Positions 6,550-27,513 are shown, counted from the first letter of the whole stretch. The stretch is 63,985 bases of DNA, filler included, from Lenisia limosa (GCA_001655205.1; 6 parts of 6 records of this genome joined end to end with filler, not necessarily neighbours in it); one strand, 5' to 3'. Made by a program: numbers and translations. Notes: generated by a model not told the origin, from the letters alone.

Positions 6550-8365
6550 ATGAAGGCGAACGAACTCGCGTCTATCATCGAAATCGATGCACTTGTAGGC
6601 AGTTAAATCACAAAGAGACACTTTTTGCACATTCTAATTTCTCAGGTTGTGCTCCAAATCGTAAAACATTGCAAGGAACAGCTCCCTACTCTTGTTTCTG
6701 GGCAAATTCTCGGATTGGACTACGATTCTCGCCTTGAAGTGTCTCATTCCTACCCTTTTCCGTTTGTTTCAGCTTTCTGGCCCTATTGTTTTAATTATAC
6801 ATAGATCCACTTCCCAGGATGCAGCTGGTGATGAGTACCAGCTTGAGATGATGCGTTGCTTAAGAGAGGTTAATGTTGATAACAACACTGTTGGATGGTA
6901 TGCGTTTGTGGATTATATGCAGTAGAATCAGATGTTCTGAAGAAAGAAGCAGTATTGTTAATTTTTTTCTTCAGGTATCAATCCACTTACCTTGGTGCCT
7001 ACCTTACTGAGTCTCTTGTTGCCTCTCAGTACAGTTTCCAGTCAGAAATTCCCAATTGCGTGGTTATCGTTTGCGATCCTGTGAGGGGGGGGATTGCTTT
7101 CTAGGTGTACTACCCTTATTTGGATTCCATGGAGTATTATGCTTAAATAATGATTTGGTTAACCTTTTTTAAGCTTCGTGCTAACCAGGGACACCTCTCT
7201 CTCAAGGCTTTCCGCCTAAAGCCTAAGTTCATGAATCAGTTTAAGGAGACTGCTTTCTCACAAGAACAGTAAGAGGGAGAGTCATTGTTCTTTTCCTCGG
7301 TATGGACAGATAGTCAGAGGAATTCATTGGGATGTTTATTTTTTTTATTTTTTTTTTTCGTATATTGTTATTCCGCACCTCTTTCAATCCTCTTTTATCA
7401 CAGCTATGAAGTAAAAGCCGTAGCTGAAGAATACAGAAGAGTTTTTTTTTGAATATTCTTCAAAATGATTACACATATATTCTTTGTAGTTTATCAATGC
7501 TTACCATGTCATAATTTTTCATACCCACGAAAGTCTTAGTTCACTGGAATAACAATTCAATTTTTTCTACTTGTTCACCGCGCCCCCCAGGCTCCAGAAA
7601 GCTCACATGACCTTCCAAGACGTTGTTGAGGAACTCCCCGTCCGTGTCCGCGTCAACTCTCACAGCAAATCCCTCCTTCAGTCCCTTTCTGCCGAATACA
7701 ACCTCACCTCTGAGGTTGGGATGGGTGCTGTTTATGACATGTTTATTAGCAGTGAGTATTTCACATTTTTCGCTATTTTATGCACTATCCATTGGACGCG
7801 ATGCTTAATAACCAATGAAGTCCGACTTCCCCCGCCTGGACCTCTCTGCACAGCCCTTCCTTGAGCGTAACCTCGAGTCTCTTGTCGATTGCATTGACTC
7901 CCTTTCACAAGACCATAACCGTCAACATGTAGGTTGCTATGGGGATTTGCAAACGTTGATTGACCAAAGCAATTTAGTGGTAACTTTTCATCTTCCGCAC
8001 TTCTTTACTTGTTTTATTGTTCCTCTAATCTTCTTAGAACTACGACAGAGCCCTTGCCCGTCAGAAGCAGCTCCAGTCCGCGTTTATGTCACGTCGTCGC
8101 CAAGAAAACGCCGAGAGGAAGGCTCGCGGTGAGCCTCCTCTCCCTGACGACACCTCTTCAAACCCCATCTTCCGTGTCCAGCCTCCTCCTTCTCGTCTCG
8201 GTATGCGGACTTGCATTGGCTGCAACTTGCCTGCCTGACGTCGTTGCTGACCCTTTAGAATCCCTCTTGACTACCAAGCAAGTCTCCGTCTACTGCTCTC
8301 AAATTAACAATTTCGCCTCCGACTCTCTTTCCAGATTATACTTGTCCGAGGCCGTCCAGAACTAA
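6550..8365 (+). CDS. EIF3H: Eukaryotic translation initiation factor 3 subunit H (MPN domain)
   Basis: Spliced translation includes IEIDALVVLQIVKHCKE...[50 protein letters not shown] and PPSRLESLLTTKQVSVYCSQINNF, which are characteristic eIF3h segments. Confidence 0.93.
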
Positions 8366-16354: not shown

Positions 16355-18886
16355 CTAGAGTTTAGGTGCAGGAACTGGAAGAGGTACCCCCATTTCAACT
16401 GCTACCTGTAAGTGTCAAATGATGGTTTGGTGTTATTTTTAGTTTTGGAAGAAGGAATCTGACCTTCTTGATTGCACGAAGTATATCCGCCATGTCTTCA
16501 CCGTAAAGGTCTCCAATGTTCCCCATTCGGAAGGTGGTAGCCTGAACGGTAAAGAGCTTTGGAGTGGAATGTCAGAAATATCTCACCTGTGTTAATTTTC
16601 CTGGGTAAATCACAAAGCCTTGTTCTTCAAGCTTTGTGTAGAACTGCTCAAAGTCGAAGTTGGGATGACTACAAAACGTCATGTTCCAATTCTAATGGGA
16701 ATGTTATCCTGGTACAACAGCATTGAGGAAATCCGCTTACTCTGGGTAGTGGAAAGAAGTGATGATGTGTCCCATTGTGCTTTTAGGGAGATAGGCCCTA
16801 AAACCAAGCTTCTCCATACCTTCTAACTAAACAGGTAAGGTTCGAGCAAAAAGCTGGTATTGAGTAATACAAGGGGGGTAGAAGGTTTAATGAAGATTAG
16901 AACCTCTGAAAATATAAAAAAAATACTTGACATAAGCACTAAAAAATTCCCCATGGTTTAAATAAAATAGTCCACGCGTCCACCTTCAAAAATTTTGATG
17001 AAACAAAAAAAAAACAAGCTTGTGGGAATTATATACGAGGGTTGAAAAACAAAACAAAAAACAGGACCTAGCGAGTCGCATCCAAATCACTATGAAATAT
17101 GGGAATTATTGACAAACCAAGAAAAATGATAAATAATCATACCAAAAGTAAATGGTTGCTTGTGTAGCGGTCAATGCGACCTTTGACTCCTAAAGAAATC
17201 AGAAAAATGTCTTGGTATTTGATCTAAAAATAAACGCTAACGTGAAGCCACCAACCTCCTTCAAGTCGAAGCTCATCCATCGCTTGCTTGAAAGCTGCAA
17301 TTGTATGCGTGGGTGGGGTGAAACGGAATTGTCCCGTTTTTTCCAACCCTAACAGGAATCAGTTGTAAAGATATACAATACAGTTATTACAGAAACGAAG
17401 AGTCAAAAAGGACATTTTGCCATACCTTTCCATTGGTCAAGAAGACTGAGAGAGACAGAGCGCGCAAAGCCTGTGCATTTTTCCAGCTCACTTGGCTTGA
17501 AAAGAACGAAGCCAAAACCTGAAGCTGGGTAAAACTTGACTTCATTAAAGTAGTGATGGAAGAGAAATCACGATTTTTTTGACCTTTGATAAAGGAATTG
17601 CAGATACTAAGATCGTGCAAGGTTGTTCATGGAAGTGAGTGACAACAAAGCTATACCCAATAGAGCCAATCTCTTCTAAACCCACCAGGAACGCCTTGGA
17701 TGCATTTATTAGCGGAGGAAACAATGAAGTCAGCCTTGTTGGTAGCTAGGTCAAATTCGCAACCAGCAAATGATGACATAGCATCAACAAAGTAAGTTGC
17801 TCCATGTGCCTTCACAACATCTCCAAGAACTAAGCAAGTCAGTAAATGTGGTTTATTCCTATAAAAAGAAGCCTATATGGCACTATGCCTACTGTCAATA
17901 TTGTTCATGATACCAGTGGTAGTTTCACAATGCACAACAGCCACATTGCTAATATCCGGATTGGCCTCAAGATGTTTGGATACCTAAGGCGTCAGTAACT
18001 CATTTAGAAATGTTAAAGATATGGGGGAATGAATATCACAATCATACCTCGACAATATTATGGGTATCGAAATGGTCATTCTCAGGAAGCACCTGCGCGT
18101 TGAGTGAAAGGTAAACGGAATGTCTGAGAATTCAAAAGAATATATAAAGATCAAAGACTATAAACAGGGTTTTTGTACATATGCACACTATTTTCCTCAA
18201 CTTACGATAGTAGACGTTTTGATATTTAGCGTATTAGCAATGCTTGCGATTCTATGTCCATAGACACCATTGATAAGCACCAACAAATGTCCATCGCGAG
18301 GCGTGGTTGATCCTTGGCTGTTATTCATCTTTTAGGCAGTATATTGTGTTTTTACACCAATAACATGACACCTCCCCCCAACCAATGACAGACTCCACAC
18401 TGAAAGTCCCAGCACCCTGCATGAGAACTGCATCGTAGCTGTCTTGAATATCACTTGATGATGTTCTGATACAGTGAGTTTACCAGAAATTACAAACAGA
18501 AACGAAAAACAAAGGTAAAAATAATCTGTGCTTGTTGAATTTTCAGCTTCCGAGGCAAATTTATTTTCCCCACTGCCGAGCATACTCATTAGCAAGGCCG
18601 ACAAGTCCCTTTCTGACACTCTTTACAATATCAAGAAAGGTACCATCTCTGGAGCCTGCCATTGTGAGGGGGTGTTGAGAGAGGAAAAGAGTTCATGCGA
18701 TCAGGACATTTCTTCTTACCATAATCACAAAGAAGCGCTTCTCTGACGGAAGGAGTAGTTGTGAGGGGGCCGGGTGTGAATAATCGTTTCATTGGAAGTA
18801 AGCCTGCCGTCAGTTTTTTTTCAAAAACACGTTTACCTACTTGTTACTTTACTAGAGCCACCAAAGAGTTGTCGAACAATGTTCAT
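16355..18886 (-). CDS. phnW: 2-aminoethylphosphonate--pyruvate transaminase (class V aminotransferase), intron-containing
   Basis: Exons give [121 protein letters not shown] and [10 protein letters not shown]. All are PhnW-type motifs. About a dozen GT-AG introns. Confidence 0.92.
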
Positions 18887-21285: not shown

Positions 21286-23430
21286 ATGGGTTGTGCAAGA
21301 TTTTGTGATGTTAAAAAGGTCTCAGAGAAAAATTTGCTGACTTCTTTAGTGAGTCTCGCTGACATCTCCAAGCTCACCATCAAGGACAAGGCCTCTGACA
21401 AGGCACGCATTGTTGAATTTGTCAACTTCCTTCTCAAGGATGGTAAGATTGAAATGCTGTTCTGTAAGATTTCTGACAAATATAGATGCCACTGTTAAGT
21501 CTGTTATCCCTCTTGATTCATCAAAGGAGGATGTTTTCTCTCAAGCCGTCGCCGATGGTGTTTTCCTTGTGTTTGCGGGTTAATCAATTGGTTTCTTTCT
21601 TCTCACTTCATTAATTCGGGTCCGGTATCGTTTTAATCAATTTCACTTTTTTTTCAGGAAACTTCTTGGTGTTGCTAAGCCTGGTTGTTATGATGAAGGC
21701 CGCCTTAATGTTGGAGAAAAGCGCACTGGATTCCAGATTACTTCAAACCACGTATGAATTTATTTGTTGGGTGAACTGTCTTACGTTTAAGAACCTTGCT
21801 ATCGATACCATTAAGGATATTGGTCTTAAGGGCTACGAAGGCCTCAAGAGTGACGACTTCAACGATGCCGAAGAGTCTCTTGTCTCTGAGATTATTGAGA
21901 AGCTCATTAAGGTGAGTTTGTGAAATATTTTATTTACCTTTGACAATTTCCAACAAATTTCTTTCACTTATAACTCTTTCCAGATGTACCTCTTCACTGA
22001 CATCAACGCCAAGAGCGCTGTTTTCGGTAAATTCCTTGAGTACCTTCCTCTCATGCGCAAGCCTAAGGCCGCCGCTGCTTCCGCTGGAAAAATTATGGTT
22101 TGCATTTATGGGAAGAGCATAGTTTTAACATTGATAGCTCGCCAAGAAGGCCCCTGTTGAAGACTTCCTCCTTTCGTGGGTTAACCACCAACTTCGCTTT
22201 GTTCAGTACCCCAAGGTGATCACTAAGTTCGACGAAATGGTTTGTGGGACTTCAATTTTGGATATGATTGTTTTATTCAATGCAGGAAGATTTCGCTGGC
22301 ATAGAGATAAAGTATAACTGTTCTTAGGATCTTGATACCTGGACCCATATCCTCTACGCCATGGAGCCCGAGAAGGTGGATTTCGCTTCTCTTAACATCA
22401 CCGACGTGAGGGGTTTTGTAGTTGCCTTCTTCTGTTCTCTGTTTCCGCTTCTCTGATTAGCACCTACATATATATATATATATTATATACATTTATTCTT
22501 TAGGAGGAGAAGAAGATGGCCCACGTCGTCTCCACTCTTAAGACCCTTGGTCTCGACTACTTCGTCACTGAGGCTGAGATCAAGGACCAGAACGGCAACA
22601 TGTTCACCTACTTCTTTGCCCAGCTCCTCCGCACCGCCCCCTTGGCCAACAAGTACTGGGCCGAGCTTGGTGACAAAATCGTTGGCGAGAAGGACGCCCA
22701 GGCTGCCGCCTACTTTGCCTGGCTCAACGGGATGGGTACTTTCCGTACTACCGACGTCCGCGAGTCCATGCTCAACGGTGTTGACATTTTCTACGCCATT
22801 GACAAGGCTCTCCCCGGCAAGCTTAACTGGACCAATGTCAACAAGGGCAAGCTCAACCAGTTCAAGGCCCAGGGCAACTGGAAGATCGCTATGGACATGA
22901 TCCTTCCCCTCACCCGTTTCCCTCCCAGCCTTGAGGTTCATGAGCTCCATGGAAACGAGGACAAGGTCTTCCAACTCGTCAAGGTCCTCTACGAGTATGA
23001 CCTCAAGCAGAACCTTGTTGCCAAGGTCCCCGCTGCTGACCTCCTCGCCTGGTAAGCTCTTTTGACTATCATTTACGCAGTTATAGTTAATGAATCCCTT
23101 CTAATTAACGCAGGGCCAATGAGTTCGCTGGAGACGCCAAGGTTGACGCTATGGCCAAAGCTGGACCTGCCTACCTCGCCGCTGTCATCAACGGAATCTC
23201 TGCTAAGGTCTGCTCCACCCATGTACCTTCAACTTCATTATATCTCTTCAGTGTGTTAAGTCTTATCCATTCAGTTTGCTTGCGAGCCCACTGCTGAGGG
23301 TGTCCTGAAGTGTGCCTGGAAGCTCGGTTTCCCCACCATGGCTACCGTCCAAGGCCTTGAGAAGCCCGAGGCTGATATGGCCCATTGCTTCCTCATGAAG
23401 CTCAAGAGTGTTATGGATATGGCTTGCTAG
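21286..23430 (+). CDS. Divergent fimbrin/plastin-like actin-binding protein (tandem calponin-homology domains)
   Basis: The model gives MVSLADISK...RIVEFVNFLLKD...VIPLDSSKEDVFSQAVADGVFL.KLL..., EDFLLSWVNHQL, AAYFAWLNGMG...ESMLNGVDIFYAIDKALPGKLNWTNVN and DLLAWANE. Strongly C-ending codons suggest high expression. Confidence 0.75.
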
Positions 23431-23636
23431 GGTGTTTCTGTGTGTTGTCTAGGGCTAGTCGTAGGGATTATTTAATTAGTATACTGTTTCTCAGGAGTGT
23501 TCCAGATGAAGTAGGGGGAGGGGGGGGGGGNNNNNNNNNNNNNNNNNNNNNNNNNNNNNNNNNNNNNNNNNNNNNNNNNNNNNNNNNNNNNNNNNNNNNN
23601 NNNNNNNNNNNNNNNNNNNNNNNNNNAACTAGTAGC

Positions 23637-26346
23637 TTAGTCCATCCAAGTGCGACGCTCTTGTGGAGGGGGTACCCACTTTTGACTAAAATTGTGAGTA
23701 ATGATGTGGCATTTAACAACAACTTGTGAAATTGTAATTGAGTCAATTTGAGTCAATTTGGTTCATCATAGATTGGCACCATTTGAGCCTACGTGATCTT
23801 GCGGCGGGAGGTGACGAGGTCAATGAGGGACTCTCCAGTGATATCATGGCAGCCAAAACGTGAAAGGTTGATACCGCCAAAGCTGAATGGCTCGCGAGGA
23901 ACAGGAACACCTACTCCGACTCCCATCATGCCGGCTACAAAGTTAGAGCCCCATTCACAATAGAAATATTCACATGAAATAACAGCAAACCTTGGAAGCG
24001 AGAAGTGAACCAGTCAGCTTGGTCGCCAGATGAAGTGTAAACCTAAAAAAAATTGTTAAAAAAAAATCTGTGAAAGTGACAGAAATAGAAATAGGAACAA
24101 TCATTCGCCCCTCCATACAGCAGCAGCGTTTCCATAGGGGTTGGAGTTCTCAATATGGATAGCTTCTTCACGATCCTATTGGGTGAGGCACGGGGAGCAA
24201 ACAGAAGCAACCACAACCGTGCTGTATCATTACAAACCTTGCACTCGTAGATTGAGAGGACAGGGCCGAAGAGCTCTTCCTTCATGCAGGGGTGTTCAGG
24301 ATCCTGGAAAAATCATCAGAATGATAAATCTGTTGTGTGACATTCACTGAACTACCCAATAAGCGTACATTGAACTTGAGAATGGTGGGACCAAGCCAGT
24401 TGCCTCCTTCCTTGTTCATCCAGGAGCGTCCGTCAAGAAGGAGCTAAAACCATCACAAAATAGAGGGCGAGAAATAATAGGACAAATGGTGGGAAAGACG
24501 CTCACTTCAGCACCGTCCTTAAGGGCCATGTCAACATAGTACATGATGTGATCACGGCCAGCTGCGTCAATGATGGGTCCCATCTACCGAGTTAATGTAA
24601 CAGGATGACAATGGATTACCAAGGATAGAGAGGGTTATGCAAAATGCACTCTGCAGAGGACAAACCTGTCCAGGTGCCACACCAGGCTGGATCTTGGCAG
24701 CCTTCGCCTTTACGGACTCAATGAGCTCGTTTTGCTTGCCAACGGTGAGGAGAATACCAGCCATCATGCAGCGTTGGCCAGCACAGCCGGTGAAACTGGG
24801 GTAATCATTAATATGGTTCAAAAGCAAACATGAAATGATGAGAAAGATGTGAATCTCCTCGGTACATATCATATCTTATATCGAATACTAGATTGTGTAT
24901 TATATGATATGATAGATGGCCCACGAGTTGACGATGTCGTTGGAGGTCATTTCGAGGCAAGCGTCGGGAACGGCAACGAGGTGGTTCTTGGCAGCTCCGA
25001 GAGCAGTGCAACGCTTGCCGCTATTGGGTAAATGAATTGTACCTAAGGCTTTTCTTTGGGCCGAATAAGTCTGAATTTTCTCAAAACTGTCGATATTTTA
25101 ACAGCCTTATCAGACAGAAGTGAAGTCCTAATTGTACCAAACATGCCAACCTCAGGATGGAACGTTCGTAGACGATTTTGGCAACTGTGGAGGATCCAAC
25201 AAAGGTCACAGCGTCAATACCTTCGCTATCACAGATGGCCTCAACAGTCTTGAATGTAAGTTCATTTCCGAAAAGATGATGATGATGAAAAGTAAACCAA
25301 TTGCTTACATCCTTGGCACCATTGACAACGTTGAAAACACCCTTAGGAAGTCCAGCCTCTTCAAGAAGTTCGGCGAGAATAGCACCGCCAATAGGGGTCT
25401 TTTCGGAAGGCTTCAAGATCATGGTATTACCGCAAGCAAGAGTGATAGGTACAGTCCTTGTTGGTGAGAACTGAAAGATTACTGAATGGACGTACCAGTT
25501 GGGAACCATGAATGGAAAGTTGAAGGGTGTGATAGAGGCCACAACTCCAAGGGGCTTCTTAACCTCTCTGCAGGTAATGCCAGGGCCAACTTCTAGCATT
25601 TTTCCAGCACTAAACTGTGAGAACCTCAGAGCTACCTGGGCTGCTTACATAAGTTGGGGCATGGAGCAAGCATATTCGTTGGTCTCATTAGCCTTAAGGA
25701 CTGAGCCAAGTGCTTCGTTGCGGTTCTTCCCGTTCTCAGCAGTAACGGAGGCAGCCTAGATGATTAAAACAGTAGTATTTGAATGCTGAGCATTCAGTAC
25801 CAAAAACCCCGCCTACAATAGCTTCAAGGTTGTTCTCAACGAGCTGTTGGTAACGGAACAGAACACTGCAACGCTCCTTGACTGACTTTGAAGACCATGC
25901 CCCAAAAGCATCACGAGCAGCATCAACGGCAGCTTCAACATCAGCTCTGCTTGGTTAGATATGTAGCCCTTGAATAAATCAACACCATGAAACATACCCA
26001 GATGACATTGCAACGTCAGAGATCACAGTTCCGCAAGAAGGGGAGACAACTGGCATATATTCATTGGTTGAAGGAGGAACAACCTTTCCAGCAATAACAT
26101 TGTTAATGACTCCAGCAGCTGAAGTACCTATGAAAGTCAGAAGAGTTTGACAGAAACGGAAATCAAGGAAATTCAGAGTATCTCTAATCATTCCCTTAGT
26201 ATACTGAAATTATTATACATTATGTCCAAAGAGAACAAAACTAGGAGAAGAGAGGAACAAAGAGTAAGGTTAAGTAACATACGAGCAGCGTGGAGGCCAA
26301 CTAAGGCAGTAGGGCCGTAGGTTACACCTTTGAAAAAGCTTAACAT
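23637..26346 (-). CDS. mmsA: Methylmalonate/malonate-semialdehyde dehydrogenase (CoA-acylating, ALDH6 family)
   Basis: Exons give PLGVVASITPFNFPFMVPNW, CGNTMILKPSEKTP, FVGSSTVAKIVY, KRCTALGAAKNH (no catalytic Glu of the usual ELGG motif, typical of ALDH6), FTGCAGQRCM, EELFGPVL, VGVPVPREPFSFGG and KWVPPPQERRTWMD*. Confidence 0.93.
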
Positions 26347-26761: not shown

Positions 26762-27513
26762 ATGTTGTCACAACTGCGAACCGCGGTTGTTAGGGCAGGA
26801 ACTCCCTCACTGAGAAGTACTATTGCCAGAGGTAACAGCAGAGCCCTCTTTTGTAAAATAATCTTTTCAGGACTTTTTATTCCGTGCTTTCCTTCGCCTT
26901 CTATCCCTGCTCCATCTTCTGTCGATGATTATGACTGGGAAAAACGTAGGGGCAAGTTATTTTTTGACTTCACTTTATCATTCCAAATCTGTCACTTCCA
27001 CATTTCACTTTCATTCCGCCTAGGCCGGCAGATTGGCCTGAAGAAGTATGAAAAAATTTGGACACCTGAAGCTGTTGAGGAGGCTTGTCGCAAAAATGCT
27101 TTGCTGACTTGGATGCCTTCTGGTATGAGGATGGGATCGATGATTCACATTTCAGGAGGTGGCATTTCAGAAAACATTATTGGTGCTTCTGGATGCTACT
27201 TTTATACATCAACAGGAGATAAGGTTCTTGATATGTCTTCCTCAGGTTTGCATTGGGCATTCATATTATATTCATTTTCAAATATCATTGTTCAGCTGTG
27301 TGTGTCAATGGAGGCTACACCCCCCCACCCGGAATGACCGAGACCATCACCGTTTGCTTGTAATTTCTGCTATTTTGATACTTCCTTTTCAAAAGCACGA
27401 TAACAGTGACAGGATGCCTTGAAAACCCTTCCTTATGTACATGGAGTAGACAGCTGTCACCCACTCAAAGCTAAGGTTTGTTTTCAATCTGTGATTTTGA
27501 ATGTACTTTCACA
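26762..27513 (+). CDS. Class-III (omega-amino acid / beta-alanine--pyruvate-type) aminotransferase, 5' part only, truncated at assembly break
   Basis: Presequence-like MLSQLRTAVVRAG..., then NALLTWMPS...ASGCYFYTSTGDKVLDMSSSAVCVNGGY...DALKTLPYVHG...HPLKAK, the typical N-terminal block of class-III aminotransferases. The PLP-lysine region lies beyond the break. Confidence 0.8.

Follow-up and report, generated by a model that had tools for sequence, protein, structure and literature searches.

PhnW, the 2-aminoethylphosphonate:pyruvate transaminase, interconverts 2-aminoethylphosphonate (AEP) and phosphonoacetaldehyde, and a gene resembling it is found in the DNA analyzed here, a stretch of 63,985 nucleotides, filler included, from Lenisia limosa (GCA_001655205.1) that is referred to below as the window. 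A substantial part of the dissolved organic phosphorus in the sea consists of phosphonates (PMC8931226, PMC11051927), and there is still debate over which eukaryotes produce or consume them. The question raised by this locus is whether it holds a working eukaryotic PhnW gene and, if so, whether that gene belongs to ordinary AEP metabolism or to a new phosphonate route. The explanation that probably accounts best for the data is a functional nuclear eukaryotic gene for a PLP-dependent class-V aminotransferase of the PhnW family, with an ordinary role in AEP metabolism, an inherited N-terminal head and, as a guess, a peroxisomal destination. Many eukaryotes are known to carry such a gene, which is of an ordinary kind, and no sign of a new phosphonate pathway was seen.

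The gene model was built from the reverse read of positions 19100-16200. The gene lies on the minus strand between an ATG at 18886-18884 and a TAG at 16357-16355 and comprises 15 exons and 14 introns, every intron having the form GT...AG (Table 1). Coordinates, strand, and the estimate of about a dozen introns had been given correctly by a sequence-only reading of the window. The introns span 45 to 316 nt (in order, 49, 64, 120, 70 [or 52], 113, 64, 63, 167, 77, 66, 316, 72, 45, and 58 nt), with phases of 1, 1, 2, 1, 0, 0, 1, 1, 1, 1, 0, 2, 0, and 0, and their GC content is 36.1%, versus 44.8% for the exons. Each of them contains an in-frame stop or has a frame-shifting length, so that all 14 must be removed; removal of these spliceosomal-type introns would leave a single frame of 395 to 401 aa that reads as PhnW from end to end.

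Table 1. Exons of the predicted PhnW gene, in order of transcription, with window coordinates and the observations that place them.
Feature	Coordinates	Strand	Basis and remarks
Exon 1	18853..18886	-	34 nt, ATG plus 11 codons; peptide like the N-tail consensus of bacterial relatives; predicted
Exon 2	18720..18803	-	NCBIfam PhnW profile positions 7-28; LFTPGP motif; alternative start Met16
Exon 3	18586..18655	-	Placed via alignment to homologues; 22 aa, without a family match of its own
Exon 4	18383..18465 (model C, preferred); extends to 18370 in model B	-	Splice-site and loop-length comparison
Exon 5	18206..18312 (model C, acceptor AAG); start 18317 in model B (acceptor CAG)	-	PhnW profile positions 74-108
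Exon 6	18048..18092	-	45 nt, 15 residues; sole phase-compatible acceptor; occupies the expected variable segment in alignments
Exon 7	17893..17983	-	VVHCETTTG motif; profile positions 120-151
Exon 8	17686..17829	-	Asp193 (17785-17783), PLP lysine K219 (17707-17705); aligned with 1M32 chain residues 155-199
Exon 9	17426..17518	-	Profile positions 201-230
Exon 10	17256..17348	-	FRFTPPTH motif; profile positions 232-261
Exon 11	17143..17189	-	47 nt; alignment to homologues
Exon 12	16741..16826	-	NCBIfam PhnW match; preceded by the longest intron (316 nt)
Exon 13	16587..16668	-	VIYPGK motif; profile positions 307-333
Exon 14	16464..16541	-	FRMGNIG; conserved Arg364 at 16529-16527
Exon 15	16355..16405	-	16 residues plus TAG; C-terminal PKL at 16366-16358

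Two versions of the junction between exons 4 and 5 were compared. Model C uses the donor GTTGGG, reads ...SVIG|STTPRD, and predicts a protein of 395 aa; model B uses the donor GTGTCA, reads ...SVIGWGEV|QGSTTPRD, and adds six residues to give 401 aa. The G at position +5 of the model C donor is also found in 12 of the 13 other donors, and the loop predicted by model C has the same length as that in homologues. Model C is the preferred prediction for this junction.

The neighbors of the gene include an eIF3h fragment near 7.2 kb of the window, a fimbrin/plastin-like CH-domain exon at 22516-23055, and a methylmalonate-semialdehyde dehydrogenase (MMSDH) gene at ~24.0-26.0 kb on the minus strand, the frame of which is broken by insert-like stretches. 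The window also contains an acidic, Cys-rich ORF of 140 aa with tandem repeats. Look-ups with this ORF and with the CH-domain exon, a PDB search with the latter, and Rfam and tRNA scans pointed to no particular lineage. The ORF at 26762-27337 had been considered as a class-III aminotransferase and was rejected, having zero matches in Pfam, NCBIfam, and PDB and a marginal tblastn match (E 0.098). Window DNA is 100% identical to part of a 111-kb metagenome contig (ENA assembly ERZ3820729, ~32x coverage), and this contig supplies sequence for the N-run of the window at 23531-23626.

An artefact, whether bacterial contamination or a dead pseudogene, would be in keeping with the bacterial origin of the best sequence matches and with the failure of prokaryote-style gene calling to pick up the PhnW gene on the ENA contig. 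Such an artefact is scarcely credible. The 14 GT-AG introns are richer in AT than the exons, and the frame is intact once spliced and retains nearly all conserved positions of the family (see below). Both contamination and pseudogene were rejected because the neighbors are eukaryotic and lie on one 111-kb contig that matches the window without a difference at ~32x coverage.

Membership in the PhnW family is secure by homology, as judged from the predicted protein. All exon pieces of at least 26 aa had their best NCBIfam matches among the PhnW models (NF010006, TIGR02326, and TIGR03301), in collinear order and covering profile positions 7-359 of 369. Summed over these pieces, the scores reach ~290, 278, and 255 bits, compared with cutoffs of 296 (NF010006), 400.8 (TIGR02326), and 360.8 (TIGR03301); the sums are of pieces only, each carrying the costs of local alignment, with exons 3, 6, 11, and 15 adding nothing. 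The best PDB matches of exon 8 were the PhnW structures 1M32, 9KK8, and 7E7G, with the lysine motif aligned residue for residue, and in local blastp, residues 17-395 of the joined model aligned with named 2-aminoethylphosphonate--pyruvate transaminases at 52 to 55% identity (E ~1e-140 to 5e-147). An alternative assignment to the alanine-glyoxylate/serine-pyruvate aminotransferases was rejected, since the PhnW models score best and other aminotransferase models score far lower; on exon 8, the pyridoxamine-pyruvate transaminase model reached 34 bits and BhcA 14 bits, versus 53.7 bits for PhnW.

Of the 98 columns with a conservation of at least 93% across 349 full-length homologues, the predicted protein retains 91, and the seven changes are all conservative (K>R, M>L, S>A, P>N, G>A, I>M, and L>I). 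The 11 invariant columns are all intact (D38, G82, Y114, R117, G171, D193, S196, N218, K219, C220, and G226 in model B numbering), and T267 and R364 are also present. Retained family motifs include the Schiff-base lysine in SSANKC, the aspartate in YFVDAM, and the arginine in FR[IM]GNIG. The roles of the PLP lysine, the aspartate facing the pyridine N, and the other residues are presumably those described in the literature on 1M32. These results, together with the introns and the collinear PhnW matches, bear out the sequence-only reading that the gene is a true eukaryotic PhnW homologue, intact and with introns. As judged from its family, the encoded enzyme would convert AEP and pyruvate to phosphonoacetaldehyde and L-alanine and back.

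Relatives were sought by phmmer with exon 8 against 1.84 billion representatives, with two exon-piece plus guide profiles, with a eukaryotic transcript query, and by a metagenome contig scan. The closest sequences among the matches listed are bacterial PhnW proteins of Planctomycetota, Chloroflexota, and other MAGs, at 52 to 56% identity. Among the matches listed (the best 120 to 150, for exon-length queries and at most 8,000 scored candidates), none exceeded 56% identity, which is a weak negative and means that substrate specificity is extrapolated over a long branch. Eukaryotic PhnW homologues are widespread and annotated, occurring in molluscs, cnidarians, echinoderms, hemichordates, Branchiostoma, crustaceans, a sponge, Capsaspora, and EukProt and MERC transcripts, and the eukaryotic clade is 44 to 50% identical to the window protein. 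Maximum likelihood trees, both quick and careful, placed the gene outside the holozoan clade and outside the main bacterial clades, with weak support for its own placement (UFBoot 51) and a long end branch of 1.05 to 1.36. Joining the gene to the holozoan clade was not rejected by the AU test (p 0.427, delta lnL 2.4). By these trees, the gene may have diverged as a sister of the known eukaryotic clade, or it may have been acquired separately.

The core motif LFTPGP begins at residue 19 of the predicted protein and is preceded by a head of 18 residues, the prediction of which depends on the 34-nt exon 1 and the 49-nt intron after it; an in-frame TAA lies three codons 5' of the exon 1 ATG. Among the full-length homologues sampled, the most frequent head length is 14 residues (116 sequences, from bacterial relatives), with the consensus M-K-T-K-K-Q-I-P-G-W-K-D-K-I. 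The window head has in common with this consensus M1, a basic residue at position 5, Q6, [IL]7, and G9, followed by four extra residues before a basic pair. The likeness of the exon 1 peptide to the bacterial tail supports exon 1 as coding, and the shared pattern M-x-x-x-[KR]-Q-[IL]-x-G makes the head look inherited rather than added as a transit peptide.

Mitochondrial presequences are positively charged amphipathic helices, typically of 20 to 60 aa, without acidic residues. The sequence-only reading had described the head as a presequence-like extension, and from this came the proposal of a mitochondrion- or plastid-targeted, stand-alone PhnW feeding an undescribed C-P route. Consistent with such targeting, the head has a net charge of +3 and zero acidic residues, the in-frame ATGs of M1 and M16 could yield a long and a short form, and most holozoan homologues bear arginine-rich, acid-free N-terminal extensions of 21 to 84 aa, which by inference are mitochondrial presequences. 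The window head does not match those extensions, being far shorter than the 30 to 85 aa of eukaryotic (holozoan) homologues, and it exceeds the bacterial tail, with which it shares Q-[IL]-x-G, by only four residues. It also contains GG, SS, and P, which disrupt a helix and make a poor amphipathic one; the best 11-residue hydrophobic moment is 1.64, similar to the 1.63 to 2.05 in the presequences of homologues. The alternative start at Met16 (18792-18790) has the weaker context, with C at -3, versus A at -3 for M1. The description as a presequence-like extension is thus not supported; the short head is most likely an inherited PhnW tail, and organelle import through it is possible but unsupported.

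A more concrete cue lies at the other end of the protein. Alignment of the last exon with homologues runs as far as ...EMGVPLPV, after which come PAPKL and the stop, so that the predicted protein ends in -PKL, a tripeptide of the accepted PTS1 set, though one of the weak class. PKL> is among the established PTS1 tripeptides of plants (PMC9542071) and, according to PMC3709128, acts as such a signal in human, yeast, and Penicillium. A C-terminal [SAPC][KRH][LMI] was absent from all 358 full-length homologues. The -PKL end appears to be a clearer targeting cue than the N-terminal head, and if the protein is targeted at all, peroxisomal import would be the best single guess.

The same ending could be taken to mean that the protein is a PhnW by descent but not by function, namely, a class-V aminotransferase of the peroxisome in which specificity has drifted to another compound, such as glyoxylate, beta-alanine, or taurine-like amines. 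In many eukaryotes, peroxisomes house alanine-glyoxylate aminotransferases of this fold, UniRef names the animal clade "alanine--glyoxylate aminotransferase," and both the long branch and the uniqueness of -PKL among the homologues fit such a change. Drift is nonetheless improbable, given that every invariant PhnW position is kept, the C-terminal arginine included, and that the scores of other aminotransferase models on exon 8 fall far below that of PhnW. An enzyme acting on AEP remains the preferred reading of the protein.

Genes for partner enzymes were sought by tblastn in the window and in positions 1-43.4 kb of the matching contig. Queries were taken from bacterial loci and comprised PntC-PepM and Ppd from a PhnW-methyltransferase cluster; PhnA-like and PhnY-like proteins from a PhnWAY cluster; PbfA, two citryl-CoA-lyase-like proteins, an acylating ALDH, a HAD protein, and an MFS transporter from a Planctomycetes cluster; and PhnX domains from two PhnW-PhnX fusion proteins. 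No PepM, Ppd, PhnX, PhnA, PhnY, or PbfA was found in this sequence, which confirms that the window holds no phosphonate partner, as the sequence-only reading had it, and widens the result to 43 kb of the contig. The sole match of the partner queries was a generic ALDH similarity, at 31.6%, to the MMSDH gene. This neighboring ALDH was considered as a PhnY and rejected, as it scores as MMSDH-type (98.8 bits versus 52.7 bits for PhnY-type).

Pathway genes in eukaryotes are not expected to cluster, so missing linked partners carry no weight for an undescribed route. The step from a stand-alone gene to such a route is not supported, for this reason and because PhnW is widespread in eukaryotes and AEP pathways have already been described: a three-enzyme AEP pathway in a coral genome (PMC3640398) and, according to the passage in PMC6439486 that cites Cui et al. 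(2016), a PhnW-PhnX pathway in dinoflagellates. The lack of partners within 43 kb was the remaining point in favor of the targeted, stand-alone PhnW introduced above; with unlinked partners meaningless in a eukaryotic genome and the head so close to the bacterial tail, that proposal is very unlikely.

The direction in which the enzyme works is a separate matter, as the PhnW reaction is reversible. At about even chances, and held less firmly than the family assignment, the gene may serve the ordinary eukaryotic AEP pathway, in which PEP mutase, phosphonopyruvate decarboxylase, and the transaminase would act in turn, with the partners encoded elsewhere in the genome; the holozoan clade has been associated with AEP synthesis (PMC3640398). 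A simple biosynthetic reading is countered by the bacterial clades at the shortest path length from the gene, in which PhnW adjoins catabolic genes: in one, PhnW lies with a PhnA-like protein, an ALDH, and Aminotran_3, and in the second, with an MFS transporter, PbfA, and an acylating ALDH. These clusters, the reversibility of the reaction, and the dinoflagellate PhnW-PhnX pathway, as PMC6439486 presents the work of Cui et al., would suit catabolism or salvage, in which imported or recycled AEP is turned into phosphonoacetaldehyde and enzymes encoded elsewhere release phosphate from it, PhnX by cleavage or PhnY/PhnA by oxidation and cleavage. This direction is rather unlikely: PhnX, PhnA, PhnY, and PbfA were not found within 43 kb, the adjoining ALDH is of the MMSDH type and not the PhnY type, and the tree puts the gene inside no catabolic clade.

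A further scenario combines the long branch with the C-terminus. The gene may represent a separate, non-holozoan lineage of eukaryotic PhnW, possibly an old transfer from bacteria, that gained a PTS1 and works in peroxisomes, conceivably with a CoA-acylating dehydrogenase, for example the MMSDH whose gene lies 5 kb away, taking over its phosphonoacetaldehyde. Such a hand-over would echo the clusters of PhnW and acylating ALDH in the bacterial relatives, and the scenario as a whole has a low probability. The preferred reading of an ordinary eukaryotic AEP transaminase adds to the record one more intact eukaryotic PhnW gene, on a long branch, and the gene is best treated as routine annotation and should not be read as pointing to a new pathway. 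Its sole unusual feature is the peroxisome-type C-terminus; if this is real, one step of AEP metabolism would take place in a part of the cell where it is not expected. Nothing beyond the -PKL end and the long branch calls for further attention.

Compared with bacterial PhnW (Salmonella 1M32; NF010006/TIGR02326), the window protein is alike in being collinear over its full length, at 52 to 56% identity to proteins of Planctomycetota, Chloroflexota, and other MAGs, and in sharing the conserved motifs, including FRxGNIG, and a similar short N-terminal tail. The differences are the 14 spliceosomal-type introns, the eukaryotic neighbors in place of a phn/pbf operon, and the C-terminal extension of five residues ending in -PKL. 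The holozoan PhnW-like clade (molluscs, Nematostella, Pocillopora, echinoderms, Branchiostoma, and Capsaspora) likewise consists of nuclear eukaryotic PhnW homologues and has a similar EMG[IV]P.P[LIV]-like C-terminal ending. In contrast to its members, to which it is 44 to 50% identical, the window protein falls outside the clade in the best tree and does not have a long arginine-rich N-terminal extension; as weak evidence in the same direction, ORF fragments resembling animal exons start with xYFVDAM and end with KCKG, boundaries unlike those of the window gene.

The dinoflagellate PhnW-PhnX system (Cui et al. 2016, in the passages of PMC6439486 and PMC9765203 that cite it) resembles the window gene, by description, as a protist PhnW for which intracellular phosphonate is the supposed substrate, and the window gene differs from it in that PhnX was not found within 43 kb. 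With the peroxisomal alanine- and serine-glyoxylate aminotransferases (class V, PTS1), the window protein shares the fold class and a PTS1-type C-terminal tripeptide, but it belongs to the PhnW sequence family, and its peroxisomal location is a prediction. In mammalian alanine-glyoxylate aminotransferase, alternative starts switch the enzyme between mitochondrion and peroxisome, an arrangement to which the M1 and M16 starts and the -PKL end of the window protein would offer a parallel.

The gene for 2-aminoethylphosphonate:pyruvate transaminase (phnW) in the window lies approximately 5 kb from an intron-split gene encoding a CoA-acylating methylmalonate-semialdehyde dehydrogenase (MMSDH), one open reading frame of which scored 98.8 bits against its family model. 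Compared with proteins of known structure, this dehydrogenase matched the bacterial MMSDH enzymes 5TJR and 4ZZ7 (80-82 bits) better than the human mitochondrial enzyme (65 bits). The CH-domain exon and the eIF3h_C match are ordinary eukaryotic neighbors of phnW. The acidic, cysteine-rich open reading frame, for which a family match was sought and none was found, runs past the window start in the loci L005 and L090 and contains 2.3 copies of a 420-nt unit (96% identity) plus 204-nt sub-repeats. Where the window has its N run, NODE_36 of the ENA assembly ERZ3820729 carries 61 real bases (L002:4016-4076); elsewhere this contig matches the window at 100% identity.

Features of the window and of loci from bacterial PhnW relatives
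Feature	Location	Strand	Match
Acidic, cysteine-rich tandem-repeat ORF, long and single	103-1839	plus	
eIF3h_C match, weak	~7178-7300		
Fimbrin/plastin-like CH-domain exon	22516-23055	plus	Pfam CH, 21 bits; Atlas CH clusters, 0.92-0.93
96-base N run	23531-23626		
CoA-acylating MMSDH gene, intron-split	24000-26100	minus	TIGR01722
PhnW/citryl-CoA-lyase-like/acylating-dehydrogenase module	L087:7001-11502		
Same module, same layout as L087	L088		
Same module	L086:5310-13688		

A module common to the bacterial PhnW relatives P0387 (from Chloroflexota, and seen on 23 contigs) and P0214 (from Planctomycetes) comprises PhnW, two citryl-CoA-lyase-like proteins (~298 and 340-350 amino acids), and an acylating aldehyde dehydrogenase, whose nearest match was the sulfoacetaldehyde dehydrogenase SauS at 474-487 bits, below the cutoff of 600. 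Neither PhnX nor PhnA was found in the module at L086, L087, or L088; the L086 version additionally includes PbfA and an organophosphate MFS transporter. The module may represent an undescribed CoA-dependent route from phosphonoacetaldehyde, no description of which was found in a literature search.

PhnW also occurs fused to a SAM-methyltransferase domain (P0050, P0416, and P0420-P0436), and at locus L089 such a fusion adjoins PntC-PepM and Ppd, a biosynthetic context. PhnX/PhnW fusions occur in both domain orders (P0046, P0098, and P0002). Both fusion types are handy markers for separating biosynthetic from catabolic PhnW clades. Six short open reading frame fragments (P0029, P0030, P0031, P0043, P0045, and P0052), with PhnW homology extending from xYFVDAM to KCKG, resemble individual exons from PhnW genes of animals, with boundaries unlike those in the window phnW gene.
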